Made by a program: the position numbers and the translations under genes
Shown: one piece after another, positions 991-34,248 of the stretch
How the letters are laid out: every line of letters starts with the position of its first letter
How positions within the stretch are numbered: the first letter of the stretch is position 1
Notes under the pieces: generated by a model
The model's input: the letters and a program-made list of their open reading frames with translations, nothing else
The model's database searches: none
What the model was told of the DNA's origin: nothing
Assembly: GCF_037042905.1 (NCBI RefSeq)
Contig: NC_087254.1
Location: 8,680,001-8,744,000 of the forward strand
Reading direction: 5' to 3'
Source: Lytechinus pictus
Lineage: Eukaryota
Length of the DNA: 64,000 nt

Positions 991-2004
991 TTATATTTTC
1001 TTACATGACATTTTCATGAAGCAACTACGAAATCCTTTTAAGCAAATGCATCTTGCTTCGGCGTTTGTCAGTATGTATACCAATGGTTGCAAACATGCAC
1101 AGGTTCCAGCAATAACGTCAAGCATGCGCTTTGTAGATTGATCAGTTGGTAGGAAGTAGGTGAAAATATATGGTAGCCACGATATATAAAAGGAACCTGT
1201 GAGGAGAAATACTTTATAGAAACCTTTAAACCTCCCTCGATGTGGCTTATAATTCATTTTTCCGTTCTGCACATCTCGAATTTGAAAGTTATCGGACGCG
1301 TCACGAGCTCGTACACGATCTGCAACTGTGGAAATGCCATTATCCATGTTAACATTATTAACATGGACACGTGGGTCTGCTTCAACCCTAAAAACTCGAC
1401 GTGCAATTACTAAAAGTTTAAAGTATAAGAGTGTCGTTAAAAGCAGAGTCGCCAAAATTGGACAGGTTTTGATTACTGTGTGAACGGTCGATACCCAATG
1501 AACCTCTACATTAGCTTGAACGAGGCAACGTTTCACATAGAGCTCAATGAAGGGTGAATTGGGAATAGGAAGATAAACTCCACATGACAATAAATTTATG
1601 ATGAGAGTTGCGACAAGTGTATTATAGAATCGGGTTCTTGTTACTAATGTAGGATATCGTAAAGGCCTCGTGATCAGTAGATAAAGATTGAGACACGTAC
1701 CACTGCGACACGTCAGTGCAGAGAGTAGGGATACTTGATACACGTATGGGAATGTCATGCTTACGATCATACAAGTTTTCTCCTTTGGGTAAGGTGTAAA
1801 GTACATTATGGCCCATAGGTTCCAGGTGCTCCCTAAAATCATATCTGAAATGGCAAGTACCTTATACAGCACACGCATGTATTCTTGTAGTTCCTTTTGG
1901 TTTCCTATTACATTGAGGACGATCATGTTCAAAATAATACACATTGCAATATTTACGATACTTAGTACGTCAGGTTTCTTTCCAAAATCGTCAGCTTCTT
2001 CCAT
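991..2004 (-). CDS. Intronless class A (rhodopsin-like) GPCR 'A', 337 aa, putative chemosensory/orphan receptor
   Basis: Seven hydrophobic segments; TM2 LAISD, TM3 end LNLYLLITRPLRY (DRY position degenerate), TM6 SWLP, TM7 QPLVY, helix 8 NAEAR. Confidence 0.92.
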   Translation of the reverse strand: MEEADDFGKKPDVLSIVNIAMCIILNMIVLNVIGNQKELQEYMRVLYKVLAISDMILGSTWNLWAIMYFTPYPKEKTCMIVSMTFPYVYQVSLLSALTCRSGTCLNLYLLITRPLRYPTLVTRTRFYNTLVATLIINLLSCGVYLPIPNSPFIELYVKRCLVQANVEVHWVSTVHTVIKTCPILATLLLTTLLYFKLLVIARRVFRVEADPRVHVNNVNMDNGISTVADRVRARDASDNFQIRDVQNGKMNYKPHRGRFKGFYKVFLLTGSFYISWLPYIFTYFLPTDQSTKRMLDVIAGTCACLQPLVYILTNAEARCICLKGFRSCFMKMSCKKI

Positions 2005-2490
2005 TCTGTTTCAGTCCCCTTTTTATAACTCTATCCTCAGAAGTATTTGTGATATCCAGAATTTTCTTGGCTACTATCGAGACATTTGGCACATAAGATA
2101 CATCTCATAAGTCTGCGGCTGTCGGCTCAGTTGAATGTGCCTGGAAACTCTCCTTCACAAATGTGGGGTCGACAGTAGCCTGGACGAGGTTTTTCCTTTA
2201 CATGATGATTCTGAGCGTACCAAGAATTCGCCAATGAAAGATCCTAACACTTCAAGCATGTACTTATCTAGTACCACTTTGAGATAGATAGCATTAGGTC
2301 AAAATTGTTGACTTCTGCATTGTAATATTCGGTAACAACGCACAAATCACTCCAAAAGTATTACTAATCTAACTGAACAATTGTTGGATATACCAGATCT
2401 AGGAAATGATTGACATCTTAATTGAAGTTGCGTTTCGAAAAACAAAACAGCCATCCATCATATTCTGGAATAAGTAGTCTCTCTTAATTG

Positions 2491-2889
2491 CAAGTTCGAA
2501 CGAAGTTGCAAATTCGTGACTTTAAATGTAAACTTGGTCGTAAGACAGCTACAAATATTTGGCCTAAAACATCTTACGTCAACGTAGTTTGAAATCGGGC
2601 ACAAATTTAATTGCCTATCGTAATGAGATACATTCTCACTCTGCAGTAGTTTAGTGTAAATAGTACATGTAAGGGAATAAATGTCAGTGTCAAGTTCGAA
2701 CGAAGTTGCAAATTCGTGACTTTAAATGTAAACTTGGTCGTAAGACAGCTACAAATATTTGGCCTAAAACATCTTACGTCAACGTAGTTTGAAATCGGGC
2801 ACAAATTTAATTGCCTATCGTAATGAGATGCATTCTCACTATGCAATATTTTAGTGTAAATATTATCTGTAAGGGAATAAATGTCAGTG
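2491..2889. repeat. Two near-identical 200-bp tandem copies
   Basis: CAAGTTCGAACGAAGTTGC...ATGTCAGTG starts at 2491 and again at 2691. Confidence 0.9.
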
Positions 2890-3023
2890 CGCGAACACCC
2901 CATCCGACTTCTTCATGGATCATGTTTGGTAAGACGGTCTTTTTTATAAGAGCAAATCAAAACCTCCATTGTGAAGGTACTGATGAAACACAGTCATAAC
3001 TAGAGAATAGAACCAAGTGATCA

Positions 3024-3154
3024 GGGGCCCGTATCACGAAGCTTAGCAATGATAGTAGAACAGTTTTCTACGATTGATTCTATTGACTACAATGTACAAT
3101 CAATCGTAAAAATCAAGCGTACGATTAATCGCTAACCTTTGTGTTACGGGATCC
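3024..3154. mobile_element. Short MITE (PIF/Harbinger-like); related copy at ~51776-51925
   Basis: Imperfect TIRs GGGGCCCGTATCACGAAGCTTAGC / GCTAACCTTTGTGTTACGGGATCC. Confidence 0.55.
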
Positions 3155-3399
3155 TGATCATCATTAAGAAATATGCACAATTTACGTCACAAACTGTAAA
3201 TTGGCAATCAGACGTATACTTTAGCATAACTTAACATTCAATAAAGCTTACGAACTCAAAATCTGAAACACTAAATGGTGGGGGTAGCAATTGTGGTGTA
3301 ACATGGATATCTTTTGTTTATTTGGCCTCAAATGCTTTACTACATCTCGAACGCAGTCTTTAAGAGAGAGCCAACAAGATCCTTCAGGTACCTCCTGGT

Positions 3400-3530
3400 G
3401 TGCTGCGATGGCGTTACTAACAGGTCAGACGTACAGATACGGATAAAAAGATCCCATTATTGATCCCTGCGGTACTCCCCATACCCTCACGTCCAGTATT
3501 GCTTAAGGTACTTTGAAGTCAGTCAGTACC
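3400..3530 (-). mobile_element. Degenerate non-LTR retrotransposon RT fragment
   Basis: Minus strand around 3452-3483 encodes WGVPQGSIMG, matching the GVPQGSxLG RT motif; no long ORF. Confidence 0.4.
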
Positions 3531-3613
3531 CCAAATTAGTTTGTCATTTCCAGTTTATTACATTACATGAATTCATATTTCCAAAAGTTATTCCGGTGTT
3601 GATAGAAATTTAA

Positions 3614-4166
3614 AGGAAACCAATACCCAAGAAGAGAAGCAATCTTATTGGTAAGAGTAAAATGAGAGGAACAATTAAAAAAAAAGTTTCATCTAAATCG
3701 GTAATGAAATGAGCAAGTTATGGACGTTTAAAAAGTCTTGTTGTACTTTGTATGGGGATCCTCAAATTGGCAAACGTGCTTCAAAATGGCTTATTTTGTG
3801 GACAACTCTCCATTTGTTTTGTACACAAATTTTCAGATTTCCCCCTTTATTTTACATATTTCACATTATCTCCTCCTGATGTTGACATATGGCGTGTGAA
3901 TTATATTTTCCCATGACACATGTTGTGCTCAGAAGGAGGCAAGATGCAAAATTTGTGTACAAAACAAATGGAGAGTTGTCCACAAAATAAGCCATTTTGA
4001 AGCACGTTCGCCAATTTGAGGATCCCTACTGAAAGTAAAACAAGAATTTTTAAACGTCCATAACTTGCTTGTTTCATAACCGATTTTGATGAAAATTTTT
4101 TTTTAATTGTTCCTCTCATTTTACTCTTTCCAATGAAATTGCTTTTCTTCTGAGTTTTTGTTTCCT
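3614..4166. mobile_element. Non-autonomous Kolobok-type DNA transposon
   Basis: TTAA|AGGAAAC...GTTTCCT|TTAA, with long (~200 bp) internal inverted repeats. Confidence 0.75.
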
Positions 4167-4616
4167 TTAAAGCGTGTTTAAAGGCAGTATTTGGCGAGTT
4201 ATAACAAATTCGTTTCACAATGACTTTATGTTTCGTTTAAAAGTAACAAAACTTTTTTTTTTCTAGATAACGGGAATAGACAATTCAAATTGTCTATTCA
4301 TTACTCATATTAAAGGTTTTGGTCATATTTGAACAAATCTTTCATTTGAAATTCATTTTTTTTTTTATTCAATTTGGAAGTCAATTTAAATCGCAGGGGA
4401 TTAACTTCATTAGGCCATATATGTTTAATGGAGGAATAGAGAATGTGCCCAAAAAGTGTCATAGACGCCTTTTAACTCTGGTTATAGAATGGCATAAATT
4501 GCGTTGTTGTGGCTATTATTTTTGCAATGTAATGTGGATCCTAGCAATTAACATCGATAGACCAGGGTATTGTTAGTGATCTATGGTTAGACTAAATACA
4601 GTGGAGATGCTTTCCA

Positions 4617-5648
4617 TTATCTTCTCAAACGTTTAAGGCAATGACGGAATCCTCCCAGGAAAAGACATCTTGCCTCAGCGTTTGTTAATATGTAGATAAC
4701 TGGTTGCAAGCAAGCAAAGCTTCCTGACAAAATGTCAAAGATTAGGATTTTAAAAGGATTCAGTGGTATCACGAAACGAAAGGTATATGGTAGCCATGAA
4801 ACATAAAAAGAACCTGTAAGAAGAATTACAGTTAATGAACCTTTCAACCCTCTTCTTTGCCGACGGACAAGGTTGATGTCGCCATTCTGCACATCTCGAA
4901 TTTGCCGACTTTCCGGTTTGTGACTGCGACCAAGAGGTTCAGAAAAACGGTCTTTATCTTCCATTCTAACATTATTAGCACGGAGACGAAGGTTGTTAGG
5001 GATGACTCCAATCTTACTTATTTTACATGCAATAAGTAGAAGTTTAATATAAAGTATTGTAGTAAATATCATTGTTACAGCTATTGGAAATAGTCTAACG
5101 ATCGTGTGAACAACTGAAGTCCAATCATCAATCTTCATCAAGCTGTCAGTCTCGATGCAACGTTTAACCAAAACTTTTATAAAAGGTGAACCGGGGATAG
5201 GCAGGTGTATTCCAGAGAGAAGTAGAATCGCGAATCCCGTAACACTAAGGGCCAGGTGGAATCGGGTTCTTGTTACAATACCATTGTATCGCAAAGGCCT
5301 TGTGACGAGAAGATAAAGATTAAAACACGTGGCAAAGCGAGAGGCCATTGAACACAGTAAAGATGCCTGATAAACATATGCAAATGACATGCTTATGATG
5401 GTGCAAGCATATTGGCTAGCATAAGCTCTCCAGAAAATGTCCCATAGGTTCCAACTGCTTGCGGCAATCATATCAGAAATAGCAACTATCTGGTAAAGCA
5501 CTCGCATGCAATCCTGAAGCTCTTTTTGGTGCTTTATGATAATAAGGAGCATCATGTTTAAAATAATAGACACAATAATTTTGACAATACTGAAGGCACT
5601 AGGCTTAAAAAGCTCCGTTGTACTTGTAACATTGTCCTGTTCTTCCAT
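4617..5648 (-). CDS. Intronless class A GPCR 'B', 343 aa
   Basis: Paralog of A; N-glycosylation sequon NVT, VAISD, FNLYLLVTRPLRY, SWLP, QPVIY. Confidence 0.92.
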   Translation of the reverse strand: MEEQDNVTSTTELFKPSAFSIVKIIVSIILNMMLLIIIKHQKELQDCMRVLYQIVAISDMIAASSWNLWDIFWRAYASQYACTIISMSFAYVYQASLLCSMASRFATCFNLYLLVTRPLRYNGIVTRTRFHLALSVTGFAILLLSGIHLPIPGSPFIKVLVKRCIETDSLMKIDDWTSVVHTIVRLFPIAVTMIFTTILYIKLLLIACKISKIGVIPNNLRLRANNVRMEDKDRFSEPLGRSHKPESRQIRDVQNGDINLVRRQRRGLKGSLTVILLTGSFYVSWLPYTFRFVIPLNPFKILIFDILSGSFACLQPVIYILTNAEARCLFLGGFRHCLKRLRR

Positions 5649-7803: not shown

Positions 7804-8815
7804 TTATTCTTTTAGGTACTTCCTGAAAGCATTCAAGTACAATGTTCTAGCCTCAACATTATTAAGCAGGTAGAGAATAGGTTGCGTCCAGGTGCTGCTT
7901 ATTGCAACTCTGCTAACGATTTCCAAAGATGAAGAAAACATCGATATTACAAAGCTTAATACGAGAAATGGTGTCCATGCGACACAGAAAGACAATGTCA
8001 GAAGCGAAATCGTGAGGAACTCTTTGTATTGCCTTTGGTATTGGCGATTACGGTTTCCGTCAAGATCTACTGCATCCGCATCAGAAGTGATACGTCTCCA
8101 CGACCGAAGCAATAAATTGCAGATCCCTGTCTTGCCACGGTTAGGGTTTCCAGGAATGGCTACAGTATTCCTTATCTCACGGATGATGAACATAAATCTG
8201 GTGAAGATTGTCGTCGTGAACACAACAGTTGCACAAATTGGTAAGGTAGAGTACAATGTATGTGCAATATATCCAACGAGGTGCAGTTTTGACACTTTGA
8301 GATAGACATCGTTCTGTTAAGAGTTGAATGAAGGGCGACTGTGGAATTGGTAGGTATACCCCATGTACCAATATAACAAAAACATATGCTGTCGAAAGAG
8401 CAAGGTAAAACCTTGTTCTGGTTAGGATCGTGAAATATCGCAGTGGCTTTGCGATGAGAAGATAGCTGGTCAAACTGATTCCGCAAAGACATATCATCAC
8501 ATAATTCATAGAAACCTGATATAGATATGCGAACGTCATGCTCAAAATTGTGCATGTTTCCCTAATTTTAAGAGAAAACCAGAGAATATTCCAACCATTC
8601 CAGGTAATGCCCAGTGTCAGTGACATATTCGATAGTGTCAAAACCTGGTAAAGAAAACGAGTGTAGTCTTGATGTTTCTGTTGATGATGCATTACAAATA
8701 GTTGTATTGCGTTGAACATAATTGATAGAAATATTGCAATGACGCAGTAAACATCTATAGGGCCCTTCATTGTAGAGCTCGTATCTGCTGCGCCAGAAAA
8801 AGCTGTAGTATTCAT
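7804..8815 (-). pseudogene. GPCR 'C' pseudogene (frameshifted copy of 16818-17825)
   Basis: 2-bp deletion at ~8268 (TGCAAT-ATATCC vs TGCAATGGATATCC) splits it into ORFs 8177-8815 and 7804-8295. Confidence 0.88.
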
Positions 8816-10627: not shown

Positions 10628-11048
10628 TCATCTCGGACGAATAGCCACATTGATTTTCAGGCACTTCTTAAAAACATTCAAGCACAATCTTCTCGCCTCA
10701 ACATTTGTCAGCAGGTAGAGTATGGGCTGCGACCAGGTGTTGCTTACCGATACCTTAACTAGTATATTTAAGGAATATGGGGGCATTGATATTAAGAAGC
10801 TTAAAAGAAAGGGCATCCAGGCAATACAGAACGAAGCAGTTAGAAGGAAAGTCATGAAGAATCCTTTATACCGCCTGTGATGTGGACGGTCACGGTGTGT
10901 GTTTAGATCTCCAACGAAATCCAACCGGGAAGCAAAAGGTGCTTCATCACTATGGCAAAAGCAACTGCAGAACCCTCTTTTGCCTCGTATACGGTTTCCG
11001 GGAATGGCTACTGTATTCCTCTTCTGATGGACAATATACATTAACCTG
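10628..11048 (-). pseudogene. GPCR 'D' 3' fragment (end of TM5 to C-terminus only)
   Basis: Nearly identical to 20961-21381 (RLMYIVHQKRNTVAIPGN...WSQPILY); homology ends abruptly at 11048. Confidence 0.88.
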
Positions 11049-13809
11049 TAAGTGGATACCAGGGAACATAAACCCCCGTGCAACCTTCGTTTCTAAACGC
11101 CTCTAAACATACTGGATGACCACTTAATTCAGTTTGTCATTTCAGAGATATATAAATAAAAATTCAAGTAACCAAATCGGCAATTGGGACAATATTCCCG
11201 TAATGGAGGGGAAAATAGATACATTCATTTTAACTCATAACACATTTATACAGCTACAAAGCAAATTACACTAACAAAATAATATTCCATACACAGGATT
11301 AAATTTGCCTCTCTCTTCTTGTTCTTGTTCTTCATCTTCCTTTACATTCTCGGTACCAAAAGTTATTCAAAATAGCCTGGCTGGTTTACGAAAAGTACAA
11401 ATGAGTAATATCTTACAATATTTTATCAGTTGAATATATGGATTTAATTGACGACCGATTTTAAAAATTGATAGCTGAAGAATTGCATGTGTTTGAGTTA
11501 AAGCTGTTGAAAACATAATCAGACCTGCCCCCCCCCCCCCGTTCCCACTCCATCCACCCCCTGAATTACTTCACATAATTCATTACTTCATAACTAACGA
11601 TTTGTGCGATATCAACTTTGCCAAATTCTCGTGGCACCACTTCAATTGCATATCAAATTATATGGTAACATTACTAGCTGGCACTACTTCCACCCCCCAC
11701 CCCTCATTCTGAGGGCCGGGTCGTGACGGTTAAATGTCAGCACGCAGCTGCATTATCATTATAATAGATGATTTGCGACTGTATTACAATTACAAATTTA
11801 AAAACGGTTTGATAATCTGCTATGCGATTCGATACTTGAGATAAATATCAAATTCCCATTCCAAGCAGAATCGTTGAGAAATCTTGAACATTTAAGTGTT
11901 ACTTTTATACGTAAATTTGCACTTTATATTTCGAAAGCAGCGCATGTATGTGAAATAATCAATGTACAACCGACACGTAAAACGGCTTCGTGGAAAAAGC
12001 GCAGTGCGTTGCCCGGCGCGTACAGTGCGTGATAAGCTGCGTTAATCGGCGCGTGATAAGGTGCGTGATACGGCGCGTTAATCGGGCCGTTAAAAATGAA
12101 TAAAATAATAAAATGAAAAAATCAAATAAATCTTCAATTTTTCTTCCAGTTTTTACTTTATATTGAAAAGTAAATATTAAGTCGTCGGCTTACCTTATTT
12201 TCTGCTTTTAGCAGTAAGTGTATTATTTTCTGTCCCATTTCTCAAACTTTCTGAAAAAGCAAGATTTTTTTTCTTCATTGATATTTTGTGACTTCTTTAA
12301 AACCCTCTAAACGCTTTCTAATCTTTGAAATGAATACCGTACGCCCTTTTCCGGGAACAAAAATACGCAATCCACTGATCAAGTTCCCGGAGAAAAGACG
12401 CTAACGCGAATGCGCAATCCAGTTCCAGGAAAAACGCTGCTAGCGCGAATCGGTCTATGCGCGTAAGCACTTTAAACGAAGATTATTTTACTGGGAACGA
12501 AATACGCGATCCAGTTCCAAAAGAAAACACGCATCTATGTGCGTAAAGCACGTTGGAATGATTTTGCTTATTACGTCATAATGATGTCACATTTAGGTTC
12601 GAGAATGGTACCAGAAGAAAGTTCATGACATGCTTTTTCATTTCAGCAATTAAACGACACAAGTTTTTTTTTTGAAAATGTCGATAAGTCCCTTCTTGCC
12701 GACAAAATTGTGATAAATTCAATAAGAAATTTATTTATGAATATCAATTGATAATACAGCGAAATCTCTTTATGAGGCCATTGGGGATAAAAACAATTCG
12801 CTCGTTACATTGGATATTTTATCCTATAAGTACTCCTTATACCAAGTTTCCACTGTGAATAATTTCATTAAAAGATAATAAATACGCACAACAAAAATGT
12901 AGCTATACCCCTTTTTTCGAACTCCCATTAATTTTTCGACGAAATGAGTTCTAGCAAAACGATTTGGCAGTAGCATTTTTACATTCATTAGCTAGCCTCT
13001 GTCGGAAAATAAGATTGTTCCGTCAAGCAATTCATGAGTGAGCAACTGAGCATACGTAAAAGGCAAAAATTCCACTTTTCAAAATTCAAAGGAATCACAT
13101 CTTATACCTTAATAATGGCAAATAACGGTAGTGTTTTGCTGAATTTATAAAGTGTGCTCACTGAACCATAACATGGCTAAAACCTCTCATATCCGTTCAT
13201 GTAAATAATACATTTTGCTGAAAAACTATTACCAAATATGTATATAGTAGACATATTTATCATTCAAATATTGGCTTTTATTGCACAACTAGTTTTCAAT
13301 AAAACAGAGACTACATACCTGTAGGTGTGCTAGACCATAGAAATCCCAAAACAGCACTAGAGCTTTATCTGTATATATTATCTTTCACTCGATTTTTTTT
13401 TTTCATTCATTTGTTTTCTAATTTATTTATTATTTTCTAATTCTATACCTGCCACTTTGGGAACCTTGCATGCTGTTATTTCATTTCAATAATTCTTCCA
13501 TAAATACATACAGACATGACATGAATAAATAGAGAATTGAATTGACGAAATAGAGGGAAACCCTTAAAAAAACACAATCTTGCAGGAAAAACCCCAATCG
13601 ATATATATGAATTGTACCTAACAAGCAAATATCACATTGATTGAAGTGTTTACTTATTGTCTCATTTCATTTAGTTTATCTTAATCGAGAATCAGGCGAA
13701 AGAATAGAACTATTTCTATAGGGACATGCGATATGTACAGTACAGGGTTCATGGAGTTTTAACTTTTTTGTGAAAAAGGATCTGAAAATTGAAATGTTTT
13801 CAACACCAT

Positions 13810-14178: not shown

Positions 14179-15208
14179 TTATTTTTGGAGGCACTTCTTG
14201 AAGACGTTCCAGATCGACCCTCTTGCTTCGGCATTTGTCATCAGGTAAAGCAACGGTTGCAGCCAGATGTTGCTCACCGATAGCTTGCGGATGATAGTCA
14301 AAGAAGACGGGGGCATCGACATAAAGAAGCTGAGAACGAATGGTATCTATGCGATACAGAAAGATAACGTCAAAAGTAGAATAACTAGGAACCTTTTATA
14401 CCGCATACGACGTAGACGGTCGCGGTTTACCTATGGACCTATTTGTAATACGTCCATGGTTTACCTTAAGATCTTCTACGAAAGTCTCTTGAGAGGGAAT
14501 CTGTGAATCATGGGAACCAGAGCAACTGCCAAACCTGTTGTTGCCACGAATGTGGTTTCCTGGCATGGCCACAGTATTCCTTATCTGACGGACGATAAAC
14601 GTTATCTTTATGAAGATTGTCGTCGTGAACACAACAGTTGCGCAAATTGGTAAGGTACTGTATAAAGTGTGTGCAATGGATGTCCAATAAACTGCAGTTT
14701 TGACACTTTGAGATAGGCAACGTTCTGTTAAGAGTTCAATGAAGTGCGACTGTGGAATCGGGAGATATACCCCATGTAACGACATGACAATGGCGTATGC
14801 TGCTGAAAGGGTAATATAAAATCGTTTTCTGGTTACAATTGTAAAATAGAGCAGCGGCCTTGCGATCAAAAGGTAGATGTTCATACTAATTCCACATAAG
14901 CATATCATCACAGATACCAACGAAACATGATATGCAAATGCAAACGTCATGCTTAAAATGTTACAAGTTTCTTTGCTTGCCAGAGAAAACCAAAGAAGAA
15001 GCCAACAGTTCCAGCTTATTCCAAGTGATACATTCGATACTGCTAGAATCTGATAAAGAACACGTGTGTATACATGAAGTTCCTGTTGTCGATTCAATAT
15101 GAATAATTGTATTTTGTTGAATATAATTGATAGAAAGACTGCAAAGATGTAGAAACTGTCAATTGAAGTATTCGTCTGAGAATTAATGTTTGACACTGTA
15201 CCATTCAT
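14179..15208 (-). pseudogene. GPCR 'E' pseudogene (34-bp insertion in ICL3 causes a frameshift; copy of 27551-28546)
   Basis: 1030 bp vs 996 bp for the intact paralog; the extra 34 bp lie at ~14425-14458. Confidence 0.88.
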
Positions 15209-16817: not shown

Positions 16818-17825
16818 TTATTTTGGGTACTTCTTGAAAGCATTCAAGCACAATGTTCTAGCCTCAACATTAGTCAGCAGGTAGAGTATAGGTTGCGTCC
16901 AGGTGCTGCTTACTGCAACTCTGCTAACGATTTCCAAAGACGAAGAAGACATCGATATTACAAAGCTTACGAGAAATGGTGTCCATGCCACACAGAAAGA
17001 CAATGTCAGAAGTGAAATCGTGAGGAACCCTTTGTATTGCCTTTGGTAAGGACGATTCCGGTTTACGTCAAGATCTACTACATGTACATCCGCATCAGAA
17101 GTGATAGTAACGTTTCCACGACCGAAGCAATTGCAGATCACTGTCTTGCCACGGTTAGGGTTTCCAGGAATAGCTACAGTTTTCCTTATCTCACGGATAA
17201 TGAACATCAATCTAATGAAGATTGTCGTCGTGAACAGGACAGTTGCACAAATCGGTAAGGTATTGAATAATGTATGTGCAATGGATATCCAATGAAGTGC
17301 AGTTTTGACACTTTGAGAAAGACAACGTTCTGTTAAGAGTTCAATAAAGGGCGACTGTGGAATTGGTAGGTATACCCCATGGACCAATAGAACAAAAACG
17401 TATGTTGTCGAAAGAGCAAGGTAAAACCTTGTTCTGGTTAGGATCGTGAAATAACGCAGAGGCTTTGCGATGAGAAGATAGCTGTTCAAACTGATTCCGC
17501 AAAGACATATCATCACAGAATTCAAAGAAACCTGATACAAATATGCGAACGTCATGCTCAAAATTGTGCATGTTTCCCTACCTTTAAGAGAAAACCAGAG
17601 AATACGCCAACCATTCCAGGTAATGCCCAGTGACATATTCGAAAGTGTCAAAATCTGGTAAAGAAAACGAGAGTAGTCTTGAAGTTTATGTTGATGATGC
17701 ATTACAAATAGTTGTATTGCGTTGAACATTATTGATAGAAATATTGCAATGACGCAGTAAACATCTATAGGGCCCTTCATTGTAGAGCTCGTATCTGCTG
17801 CGCCAGAAAAAGCTGTAGTATTCAT
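16818..17825 (-). CDS. Intronless class A GPCR 'C-prime', 335 aa
   Basis: Full 7TM ORF; MNTT sequon, LCGISLNSYLLIAKPLRY, AWTP, QPILY. Confidence 0.92.
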   Translation of the reverse strand: MNTTAFSGAADTSSTMKGPIDVYCVIAIFLSIMFNAIQLFVMHHQHKLQDYSRFLYQILTLSNMSLGITWNGWRILWFSLKGRETCTILSMTFAYLYQVSLNSVMICLCGISLNSYLLIAKPLRYFTILTRTRFYLALSTTYVFVLLVHGVYLPIPQSPFIELLTERCLSQSVKTALHWISIAHTLFNTLPICATVLFTTTIFIRLMFIIREIRKTVAIPGNPNRGKTVICNCFGRGNVTITSDADVHVVDLDVNRNRPYQRQYKGFLTISLLTLSFCVAWTPFLVSFVISMSSSSLEIVSRVAVSSTWTQPILYLLTNVEARTLCLNAFKKYPK

Positions 17826-20960: not shown

Positions 20961-22131
20961 TCATCTCGGACGAACAACCACATTGATTTTCAGGCACTTC
21001 TTAAAAACATTCAAGCACAATCTTCTCGCCTCAACATTTGTCAGCAGGTAGAGTATGGGCTGTGACCAGGTGTTGCTAACCGATACCTTTACTAGTACAT
21101 TCAAGCAACAGGGGGGCATTGATATTAAGAAGCTTAAAAGAAAGGGTATCCAGGCAATACAGAACGAAGCAGTTAGAAGAAAAGTCATGAAAAATCCTTT
21201 ATACCGCCTGTGATGTGGACAGTCGCGGTGTTTGTTTAGATCTTCAGCAAAATCCACCCGGGAAGCAAAAGGTGCTTCATCACTATGGCAAAAGCAACTG
21301 CAGAACCCCCTTTTGCCTCGTGTATGGTTTCCGGGAATGGCTACTGTATTCCTCTTCTGATGGACAATATACATTAACCTGATAAAGATTGCAGTAATGA
21401 ACAAGACTGTCCCACAAATTGGCAAGGTATTGTTCAATGTGTGTACAATTGATGCCCAGTGGACCACGGGACTGAAAGTTTTGGACACACAGCGTTCTGT
21501 CAAGAGTCTCATGAATGGCGACTGAGGAATAGGTAGATATACCCCATATACCAATATAACGAACCCGTATGCTGCAAGAGCCAGGTAAAACCTTGTTCTG
21601 GTTACGATCGTGAAATACCGCAGTGGCCTTGCGATTAGAAGATAGATGTTCAAACTGATTCCACACAGGCATATCAGCACGGAACCTAAAGATACCTGGG
21701 GAGCGTTTCATGAAAGGACTTGTCAGACGTTTTATCCGACAAGTCCTATTTTATACGACAGTTACCATAGTAACATTGCTTATCAGCCAATCAAAATCAA
21801 GGAAAGATGTCAGATCTGACAACATGTCAGACAAAATTGTTGATGAAACGCTCCCCTGATATAGAAAAGCGAACGTCATGCACGTTTCTTTGCTAGCAAA
21901 GGAAAACCAGATAAAAAGCCAACCATTCCAGGTAATGCCCAGTGACATATTCGATCCTGCCAGAATCTGGTAAAGAAGACGGATGTATTCCTGTAGCTCC
22001 TGCTGATGGTAGATTACAAACAGCTGAATTGCGTTAGATAATATTGATAGAAAAGCTGCAAAGATGTAGAAACTGTCAAGAACACCATTCGTCTCATTGG
22101 CTGTTACATTATCGAATGTCGTACCATTCAT
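20961..22131 (-). pseudogene. GPCR 'D-prime' interrupted in TM3 by a MITE
   Basis: ORFs 21751-22131 and 20961-21680; removing 21699-21858 restores ...MTFAFLYQVSLGSVLICLCG... and a 336-aa ORF. Confidence 0.88.
21699..21855. mobile_element. 157-bp PIF/Harbinger-like MITE
   Basis: TIR GGGAGCGTTTCAT / ATGAAACGCTCCC with a 3-bp CTG target duplication. Confidence 0.88.
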
Positions 22132-27550: not shown

Positions 27551-28546
27551 TTATTTTTGGAGGCACTTCTTGAAGACGTTCAATATCGACCCTCTTGCTT
27601 CGGCATTTATCATCAGGTAAAACAAGGGTTGCAGCCAGATGTTGCTCACCGATAGCTTGCGGATGATAGTCAAAGAAGACGGGGGCATCGACATAAAGAA
27701 GCTGAGAACGAATGGTATCCATGCCATACAGAAAGATAACGTCAAAAGTAGAATAACTAGGAACCCTTTATACCGCCTACGATGTGGACGGTCGCGGTTG
27801 ACGTTAAGATCTTCTCCGAAAGTCTCTTGAGAGGGAATCTGTGAATCATGGGAACCAGAGCAACTGCCAAACCTGTTGTTGCCACGAATGTGGTTTCCAG
27901 GCATGGCCACATTATTCCTTATCTGACGGACGATAAACATTATCTTTATGAAGATTGTCGTCGTGAACACAACAGTTGCGCAAATTGGTAAGGTACTGTA
28001 CAAAGTGTGTGCAATGGATGTCCAATAAAGTGCAGTTTTGACACTTTGAGATAGGCAACGTTCTGTTAAGAGTTCAATGAAGGGCGACTGTGGAATCGGT
28101 AGATATACCCCATATAACGACACGACAATGGTGTATGCTGCTGAAAGGACAATATAAAATCTTTTTCTGGTTACGATCGTAAAATATCGCAGCGGCCTTG
28201 CGATCAGAAGGTAGATGTTCATACTAATTCCACATAAACACATCATCACAGATACCAACGAAAAATAATATGCAAATGCAAACGTCATGCTTAAAATGTT
28301 ACAAGTTTCTTTGCTTGCCAGAGCAAGCCAAAGAAGAAGCCAACAGTTCCAGCTTATTCCAAGTGATATATTCGATACTGCTAGAATCTGGTAAAGAATA
28401 CGTGTGTATTCCTGAAGTTCCTGTTGTCGATTCAATATAAATAATTGTATTATGTTGAATATAATTGATAGAAAGACTGCAAAGATGTAGAAACTGTCAA
28501 TTGAAGTATTCGTCTGAGAAGTCATGTTTAACTCTGTACCATTCAT
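27551..28546 (-). CDS. Intronless class A GPCR 'E-prime', 331 aa
   Basis: Full 7TM ORF; MNGT sequon, LCGISMNIYLLIARPLRY, AWIP, QPLFY. Confidence 0.92.
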   Translation of the reverse strand: MNGTELNMTSQTNTSIDSFYIFAVFLSIIFNIIQLFILNRQQELQEYTRILYQILAVSNISLGISWNCWLLLWLALASKETCNILSMTFAFAYYFSLVSVMMCLCGISMNIYLLIARPLRYFTIVTRKRFYIVLSAAYTIVVSLYGVYLPIPQSPFIELLTERCLSQSVKTALYWTSIAHTLYSTLPICATVVFTTTIFIKIMFIVRQIRNNVAMPGNHIRGNNRFGSCSGSHDSQIPSQETFGEDLNVNRDRPHRRRYKGFLVILLLTLSFCMAWIPFVLSFFMSMPPSSLTIIRKLSVSNIWLQPLFYLMINAEARGSILNVFKKCLQK

Positions 28547-33234: not shown

Positions 33235-34248
33235 ATGAAGATGAGTAGCTTTGAGGAAATGGCGTTAAACCAGACACAAAGGAGATCAGCAGTTCAATTC
33301 ACATTTGATATGGGTTTATATCTGTTCATCATATTGTGTTCAACGATTTTGAATATTATCATCATTGTCATCATTAATCAACAAACACAAATGCAGGATG
33401 TTATGAAAGTACTTTATCGAGTTCTGGCTGTTTTGGATCTCACCTTTGCCGTACTTTGGAATTTGTGGGGGATATTCTGGTTTCCTTTTACCGATTTGTA
33501 CTCCTGTAATCTCATCACAAGCCTTTTTGTGTTTCCTACCTATGTCATACTCAACGCCATCATGGCATGTTTATCAGGTATCAGCTTTACTCTGTATCTC
33601 CTCGTAAGCCGTCCCTTGCATTTTTACAGGATCGTCACTCCGACTAGATTCCGGATAGCTCTTGGGATTGTATCTCTCCTGATTCTTTTGGCATCAGGGA
33701 CATCACTGCCTGTCAACACTTCCCCGTTTCATCGGGCTCGCGTACAACAATGTATGTTGAACACGTCGTTAAACATCAATAACATCAACTGGATAGAAAT
33801 TGTCAGTGCTGTCTTATTCCTCGCTCCTGTTGTAGTGACATTTGTCATTTTGACCGTGATCTCGATCAAACTCATTGGAATTGTACGTCAGCAATCGAGA
33901 GCTATTGCCACAGACACTACAGAGGTGCAGGTCCGCAAGACAACCCTTACCGATCGCCAACAGCATCGGCTAGTACGGAATGGATACAACCGCCGGCAGA
34001 TAAAGGGCAAGCCCGCAATTTGTCAACGTTACAAAGGAATCATTACCATTCTCACTATCTCATGTGCATTCATTCTTGGATGGGCACCGTTCTGTATCAT
34101 GAGGACCGTACCAGGTCTTTTTTCTTCGAATGCTCTCGTCATCGTAGATAAGTTTGCTGTGTCCACTACATGGATACAACCGATCCTGTATCTAATGACT
34201 AATGGAGAGGCGAGGAAGATATTTCTTTCGAAAATAGGTGTACGTTGA
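33235..34248 (+). CDS. Divergent intronless class A GPCR 'F', 337 aa, same family
   Basis: LAVLD, LSGISFTLYLLVSRPLHF, GWAP, WIQPILYLMTNGEAR. Confidence 0.92.
   Translation: MKMSSFEEMALNQTQRRSAVQFTFDMGLYLFIILCSTILNIIIIVIINQQTQMQDVMKVLYRVLAVLDLTFAVLWNLWGIFWFPFTDLYSCNLITSLFVFPTYVILNAIMACLSGISFTLYLLVSRPLHFYRIVTPTRFRIALGIVSLLILLASGTSLPVNTSPFHRARVQQCMLNTSLNINNINWIEIVSAVLFLAPVVVTFVILTVISIKLIGIVRQQSRAIATDTTEVQVRKTTLTDRQQHRLVRNGYNRRQIKGKPAICQRYKGIITILTISCAFILGWAPFCIMRTVPGLFSSNALVIVDKFAVSTTWIQPILYLMTNGEARKIFLSKIGVR

Follow-up and report, generated by a model that had tools for sequence, protein, structure and literature searches.

Can a receptor gene carry, as its wild-type state, the very arginine that switches on several G protein-coupled receptors (GPCRs) of class A when it arises by mutation? 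The question is raised by two genes at the start of a 64,000-nucleotide stretch of Lytechinus pictus DNA (contig NC_087254.1, positions 8,680,001 to 8,744,000; G000:C10:8680001-8744000 of the 812-Mb genome), which we refer to as the window. Receptor A (991..2004, minus strand) and receptor B (4617..5648, minus strand) are intact class A GPCR genes made of a single open reading frame (ORF), of 337 and 343 aa respectively, and both match the Pfam family 7tm_1 (PF00001; E = 7e-10 and 39.2 bits for A, E = 1e-10 and 41.8 bits for B, with a cut-off of 30.5 bits). Both have an arginine at generic position 3.43, where a leucine of class A receptors forms a hydrophobic lock with residues 6.40 and 6.41 (PMC6954041). 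Changing this leucine to arginine raises basal cyclic AMP (cAMP) 3.2-fold in TSHR, 5-fold in FSHR and 10-fold in LHR (PMC5136658). The premise of the original prediction, which was made from the letters of the window, was that Leu3.43 belongs to this lock and that L3.43R activates several class A receptors including the LH receptor, and it is borne out by these reports. Going beyond that prediction, sequence comparison indicates that polar residues at 3.43 are recurrent and conserved between species in a receptor family that lacks Arg3.50.

On the minus strand, A reads ctg acg tgt CGC agt ggt acg tgt ctc aat ctt tat (L-T-C-R-S-G-T-C-L-N-L-Y) and B reads atg gcc tct CGC ttt gcc acg tgt ttt aat ctt tat (M-A-S-R-F-A-T-C-F-N-L-Y). 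Arg100 of A (codon CGC, 1705..1707, minus strand) and Arg104 of B (codon CGC, 5337..5339, minus strand) thus stand seven residues ahead of the central leucine of an N-L-Y motif, which takes the place of D-R-Y (3.49-3.51) in both proteins (N106-L107-Y108 of A, 1681..1689; N110-L111-Y112 of B, 5313..5321; both on the minus strand). All the other copies in the window that retain the third transmembrane helix (TM3), three of them intact and three broken, have leucine at the aligned position. Direct codon reading and alignment therefore confirmed the predicted contrast between A and B and their paralogs.

Regarding the register, a profile of 30 family sequences was compared with all solved structures, and aligned without gaps from 3.40 into the second intracellular loop (ICL2) on GPR52 and the alpha-1A adrenoceptor. 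The matched TM3 stretches are M-W-C-L-A-C-I-S-V-D-R-Y in GPR52 and I-M-G-L-C-I-I-S-I-D-R-Y in the alpha-1A adrenoceptor, so that the N-L-Y of the family falls onto D-R-Y and the Leu/Arg column onto Leu3.43 of both structures. Downstream, the P-L-R-Y of the family agrees with the usual P-x-x-Y of ICL2. The assignment to 3.43, seven residues before 3.50, was thereby upheld. The AlphaFold2 model of A showed a seven-helix fold plus helix 8 (predicted local distance difference test score, pLDDT, 85.4; predicted template modelling score, pTM, 0.81), with Arg100 in the middle of the TM3 helix (residues 75-112), in a block with a pLDDT of ~96. A Foldseek search with this model returned class A receptors as all the top PDB matches (TM-score by target, 0.6-0.76). 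Position 3.43 faces 2.46, 6.40, 6.41 and 7.49 (PMC6954041, PMC5136658) and, from this conserved class A geometry, we infer that the side chain of Arg3.43 faces the receptor core.

How common is this residue, and how often did it arise? We took a census of 71 near-full-length members of the family, 48 of which are intact ORFs of the L. pictus genome. Position 3.43 is Leu in 56 of them, Ile in five, Arg in four and Val in two, while Gln, His, Thr and Phe occur once each. Besides A and B, the arginine carriers are a paralog on chromosome 4 (L025, G000:C4:23055477-23056397) and a protein from another species (P0024). In a maximum-likelihood (ML) tree built with the 3.43 column left out (IQ-TREE, LG+C20), A and B share one clade of seven members. 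The sister group of B consists of two Leu paralogs whose genes immediately precede the window on the upstream side (support 100/90). The next branch is that of two Leu proteins from the same other species as P0024, with A below all of these and the Gln3.43 paralog L005 at the base of the clade. By parsimony, Arg3.43 requires three changes on this tree, in A, in B and in the chromosome-4 lineage. Forcing A and B into one clade was only 5.6-5.9 log-likelihood units worse and was not rejected by the approximately unbiased (AU) test (p 0.17-0.18), and both a single and a double origin of the arginine are possible within the A/B clade. CGC encodes Arg3.43 throughout, and the leucine of the nearest paralogs is encoded by CTC, so each gain amounts to one T>G step. 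Gene conversion does not explain the shared arginine, because A and B show no local peak of nucleotide identity around codon 100, and because B and L025, which share Ser3.42-Arg3.43, encode the neighbouring Ala and Ser with different codons.

Other polar residues were found at the same position. L005 (G000:C10:8668667-8669677, ~10 kb upstream of the window) is intact and combines Gln (CAG) at 3.43 with His at 7.49. Gln3.43 is an oncogenic activating change of CysLTR2, and it has been stated that no known GPCR sequence has Gln at 3.43 (10.1101/663153). Histidine is found at 3.43 in the lineage of the paralog L027 and in P0040 and P0051, which belong to other lineages (at least three lineages in all).

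How well is this column itself conserved? Position 3.43 underwent 13 parsimony changes, with a column median of 19 (31st percentile), and is less conserved in the family than 3.40, 3.42, 3.45-3.47 and 3.49-3.51. From CTC, arginine is one of six non-synonymous single-step neighbours, and three arginines among ~12 non-synonymous changes at 3.43 come near the mutational expectation of 1 in 6; hence, the recurrence of arginine as such is not beyond chance. The unusual point is that 3.43 should accept, and retain, Arg, His and Gln in the first place. When we looked for a co-varying partner residue, no column changed consistently with Arg3.43. B and L025 share a Cys3.42Ser change and a non-Leu residue at 2.46, neither of which is seen in A, and L022, a sister with Val3.43, also has both.

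Once acquired, these residues last. L025 and P0024, which come from different species, are sisters in the tree (100/99) and 74% identical, and both have Arg3.43. Likewise, L027 (G000:C4:8299794-8300714), with His3.43 (CAT), is 91% identical to XP_041461588.1 of L. variegatus, which also has His. For A itself we used DNA contigs of run X2, which cover most of the gene, are ~4% diverged from it and come from a different individual or a sister species. Of the 18 differences of the contig over 1568-1999, 16 are listed and none of these changes the Arg codon at 1705-1707, while the other two are presumably near its ends. The arginine of A is thus not a private assembly error, since an independent contig keeps the codon, although an unchanged codon at 4% divergence is, taken alone, weak evidence of maintenance. 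Across A, 37 single-base differences were listed, and the ORF stays open under all the listed changes. The only indel within the gene is a 9-bp in-frame insertion of three codons at 1377, in the third intracellular loop. The listed differences comprise 15 synonymous and 21 non-synonymous ones, with ~8 synonymous expected under neutrality; this gives a ratio of non-synonymous to synonymous rates (dN/dS) of 0.40, and gene A is therefore under purifying selection. Over B, the X2 contigs are 6-9% diverged, with no indels. Besides, run X10, which can only be guessed to be RNA, contains a 153-nt contig that matches B exactly (4915-5065). X10 has another organism label than the DNA runs with their 4-9% divergence, which suggests that the latter may come from the sister species.

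According to these comparisons, arginine and histidine at 3.43 persist once gained, across species for one Arg and one His lineage, and so are compatible with function. The original prediction had reasoned that an arginine shared by two divergent intact paralogs is probably selected. This holds in so far as the residue is not an accident of decaying genes, given the dN/dS of A and the third Arg lineage kept between species. The argument is weaker than it sounds, though, in that the column is only moderately conserved, arginine is a single step from CTC, and the AU test leaves the count of origins within the A/B clade at one or two.

The family to which A and B belong is large and has an altered activation switch. 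Protein A had 102 matches in the L. pictus genome, and these form tandem clusters spread over six or more chromosomes (contigs C1, C2, C4, C5, C10 and C14). When all of 1.84 billion cluster representatives were searched with the profile, only 40 reached E<1e-30, and the source names among the family matches are all Lytechinus, most matches carrying no name; because of these few representatives and names, the family looks restricted to echinoids and expanded there. One NCBI protein, which bears the automatic name 'GPR52-like [Lytechinus pictus]', has exactly the sequence encoded by a paralog ORF of contig C1. Neither A nor B has D/E-R-Y at 3.49-3.51: N-L-Y prevails in the family, N-K-Y, N-M-Y, N-I-Y and N-S-Y being variants of it, and Arg3.50 (N-R-Y or C-R-Y) is confined within the family to the most distant paralogs. 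A and B keep Asn1.50, Asp2.50, Trp6.48, Pro6.50, Pro7.50 and Tyr7.53, and have Gln at 7.49. This last residue is typical of the family (Q-P-x-x-Y for N-P-x-x-Y), which also has Thr at the aligned 5.58, with a Tyr four residues on, and no acidic residue at 6.30. Two further features were observed across the family. Its conserved TM3 cysteine is at 3.21 instead of 3.25, and a motif of the second extracellular loop (L-P-I-P-x-S-P-F ... R-C) is almost invariant, which is surprising if the ligands are presumed to be diverse.

Does the arginine at 3.43 make up for the one missing at 3.50? We pooled the family with the 150 best cluster representatives. Of the 108 sequences without Arg3.50, 9 have Arg, His or Gln at 3.43, compared to none of the 86 relatives with Arg3.50. 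This distribution agrees with the report that 3.43 is hydrophobic in 96% of 286 class A receptors (10.1101/663153). A receptor that has lost Arg3.50 thus appears free to take a basic or polar residue at 3.43. The suggestion that Arg3.43 compensates for the missing Arg3.50 thus survives in a weaker, permissive form; as a requirement it finds no support, because roughly nine in ten members of the family have neither arginine and keep a hydrophobic residue at 3.43.

Taking these results together, we consider it fairly probable that A and B are orphan receptors, functional and fast-evolving, with a dismantled switch, in which position 3.43 came under relaxed or changed constraint, repeatedly turned polar and, where it is arginine, shifts the resting equilibrium. 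The family has dismantled its canonical cytoplasmic switch, with N-L-Y for D-R-Y, Q-P-x-x-Y for N-P-x-x-Y and no acidic 6.30. In this setting constraint on the lock position would have eased or changed, and 3.43 has repeatedly taken long polar N-H donors: Arg in A, B and the paralog on chromosome 4, Gln in one lineage and His in three or more. In A and B, the guanidinium group of Arg3.43 would lie in the core between TM2, TM3, TM6 and TM7, below Asp2.50. It would be unable to pack on Leu6.40 and Thr6.41 as leucine does, so TM3-TM6 packing would be loosened, and Gln7.49, Tyr7.53 and Asp2.50 (also Thr6.41) are its candidate bonding partners. In the glycoprotein-hormone receptors, activation by L3.43R has been ascribed, as a proposal, to hydrogen bonds that Arg3.43 makes in the active state with 7.45 and 7.49 (PMC5136658). 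By analogy, constitutive activity of A and B is plausible, and the shift would most likely be towards higher basal, less ligand-dependent signalling, the upward direction being proposed with low confidence. The canonical rules may not transfer to A and B, because Arg3.50 is missing, 7.49 is Gln and the aligned 5.58 is Thr. A bolder version, which we find distinctly doubtful, is that a family devoid of Arg3.50 has, several times in its evolution, gained a basic residue (Arg or His) at 3.43, two turns of the helix above, as a cationic core switch for ligand-free or non-canonical signalling. If this were true, these receptors would be to nature, and conserved between species, what the L3.43R/Q mutations are to disease.

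Several observations weigh against the proposal of a functional, equilibrium-shifting arginine. In a saturation scan of CysLTR2, Arg3.43 lowered agonist potency and agonist-dependent activity and was absent from the variants with raised basal activity, which at this position carried Gln, Glu, Ala or Ser (10.1101/663153). In A2AR, L95R (3.43) raised basal cAMP only 2-fold, compared to 28-fold for L95A (PMC6954041). The direction of the effect of Arg3.43 therefore depends on context. The predicted structures gave no activation-state signal either: the models of A and of the Leu paralog L002 (pLDDT 86.6) have the same list of Foldseek neighbours, which are mostly active Gs complexes for A and for this Leu control alike. 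The association between 3.43 and 3.50 has a Fisher p of 0.005, a test that ignores phylogeny, and comprises about seven independent origins. The terminal branches of A and B are the longest in their clade (~0.6 substitutions per site) and each protein departs from 5 of the 56 family-conserved columns, so some relaxed constraint on both is possible. In the RNA-seq runs X11 and X12 (tissue unknown; with the species label of the best DNA runs), depth was zero on A and on B. Finally, neither receptor is among the annotated proteins of the database searched, and both seem to be unannotated.

Some of these points favour a plainer explanation, according to which A and B belong to an array in birth-and-death turnover and are themselves redundant or adrift, constraint is merely relaxed, and Arg3.43 is neutral or slightly harmful, has no adaptive or signalling meaning and is tolerated in genes of little importance. 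The long branches, the silence in both RNA runs and the moderate conservation of 3.43 speak for it; so do the at least four broken copies in the same array and an arginine that lies one step from CTC and turns up near its one-in-six share. However, both ORFs are intact after ~0.6 substitutions per site, with the residues at 1.50, 2.50, 6.48, 6.50, 7.50 and 7.53 all kept, and A has 15 synonymous differences where neutrality would give about half as many. Arg and His are kept between species in two other lineages, and a buried arginine in a redundant receptor usually leads to misfolding and then to decay. We hold this explanation to be possible, if on the unlikely side.

Two further alternatives give the arginine a definite role. 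In one of them, Arg3.43 replaces Arg3.50 as a cationic TM3 microswitch, directed to Tyr7.53 or to the G protein, and restores coupling. Seven residues apart, the two positions share a face of the helix; a basic or polar 3.43 is confined to sequences without Arg3.50, and Asp2.50, Gln7.49 and Tyr7.53 are kept in all the Arg3.43 members. Yet ~90% of the family does without either arginine, so compensation is not required, no other column moves with Arg3.43, and by the established geometry of class A receptors 3.43 is two turns (about 10 Å) deeper than 3.50, out of reach of the G-alpha C-terminus; we therefore judge a relocated switch to be very unlikely. The other alternative inverts the effect and runs counter both to the original prediction and to the reading preferred here: a salt bridge between Arg3.43 and Asp2.50 would take the place of the sodium ion, clamp the inactive state and lower basal activity. 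Asp2.50 is indeed present in 4 of 4 Arg3.43 sequences compared to 44 of 71 family members, but chance alone would put it in three independent lineages roughly one time in four. In A2AR, L2.46R and N7.49K, beside the sodium pocket, are reported to lock inactive packing via Asp2.50 (PMC6954041), and the loss of potency of CysLTR2 with Arg3.43 (10.1101/663153) points the same way. Against this, L3.43R is activating in LHR, FSHR, TSHR and, weakly, A2AR (PMC5136658, PMC6954041), and we give such a clamp hardly any credence.

In order to contextualize the functional, equilibrium-shifting reading that we prefer, we compared A and B with known systems. By the ungapped profile alignment, their arginine occupies the same generic position as human LHCGR L457R, FSHR L460R, TSHR L512R/Q, A2AR L95R and CysLTR2 L129Q. 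The activating human L3.43R mutations are the same Leu-to-Arg change by one nucleotide, and the neighbouring paralog L005 has the Leu-to-Gln version. The human cases, however, are somatic, germline-disease or engineered changes, whereas the arginine of A and B is the wild-type state of intact genes, kept between species in a sister lineage. The human receptors also have an intact DRY, NPxxY and Tyr5.58, unlike A and B, with their N-L-Y, Q-P-x-x-Y and Thr at the aligned 5.58. Among solved structures, the best matches of the family profile are GPR52 and GPR21, which are self-activated orphans (E ~4e-14). The match to GPR52 is weak, its best-scoring stretch covers TM1-TM4 only, GPR52 has both DRY and Leu3.43, and no orthology is implied. 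A further comparison is with the surreal-GPCRs of Strongylocentrotus purpuratus, groups A-F (cited in PMC7042368 and PMC5442662), which, like the family of A and B, are single-exon rhodopsin-type receptors in tandem arrays, with lineage-specific expansions, many pseudogenes and weak similarity to aminergic receptors. By these features, the family fits the single-exon, tandem 'surreal'/odorant-receptor-like kind of echinoderms (PMC7042368), a likeness drawn from descriptions in PMC7042368 and PMC5442662, which describe no N-L-Y subfamily and no 3.43 state.

The genes lie in a tandem array of single-ORF class A receptor genes and remnants, nine in all, that occupies the first ~35 kb of the window and in which every intact copy matches PF00001 (E from 1e-9 to 3e-13). 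Besides A and B, ORF search and alignment identified two intact paralogs on the minus strand, at 16818..17825 (Leu3.43, codon CTT, with N-S-Y) and at 27551..28546 (Leu3.43, codon TTA, with N-I-Y), and an intact one on the plus strand, at 33235..34248 (Leu3.43, codon TTA, with T-L-Y), which is more distant in the tree as well. Four broken or partial paralogs are interspersed among the intact copies in the same orientation. The one at 7804..8815 (minus strand) is split into two overlapping ORFs with a frame change and has Leu at 3.43 (within 8177-8815), the one at 14396..15208 (minus strand) is truncated to an ORF of 270 aa, also with Leu at 3.43, the one at 20961..21680 (minus strand) lacks an open 5' part and again has Leu, and a further remnant spans 10628-11083. 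Such interleaving of broken and intact copies is typical of birth-and-death turnover of an array.

Between A and B, at 3019-3174 and 3487-4266, there are very high-copy repeats, with a summed contig depth of at least 10^5 in DNA run X2. RNA reads map to both of their strands in numbers from hundreds to thousands, and these repeats are the only place between and on the two genes where runs X11 and X12 have reads, at heavy depth. With their many inverted joints, they are probably a transposable element with internal inverted repeats.

Few sites of activating mutation in class A receptors are as well documented as position 3.43, and receptors that have Arg, His or Gln there as the wild-type residue amount to a natural experiment. 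For now the weight of the finding is moderate, as it concerns a single residue in orphan receptors. The adjacent Leu paralogs serve as built-in controls, and A, B and L025 can be set against L002, L003 and L022 as a matched set. Such receptors bear on the extent to which the hydrophobic lock needs the arginine of DRY, and on whether a family without Arg3.50 is still activated by the canonical route.

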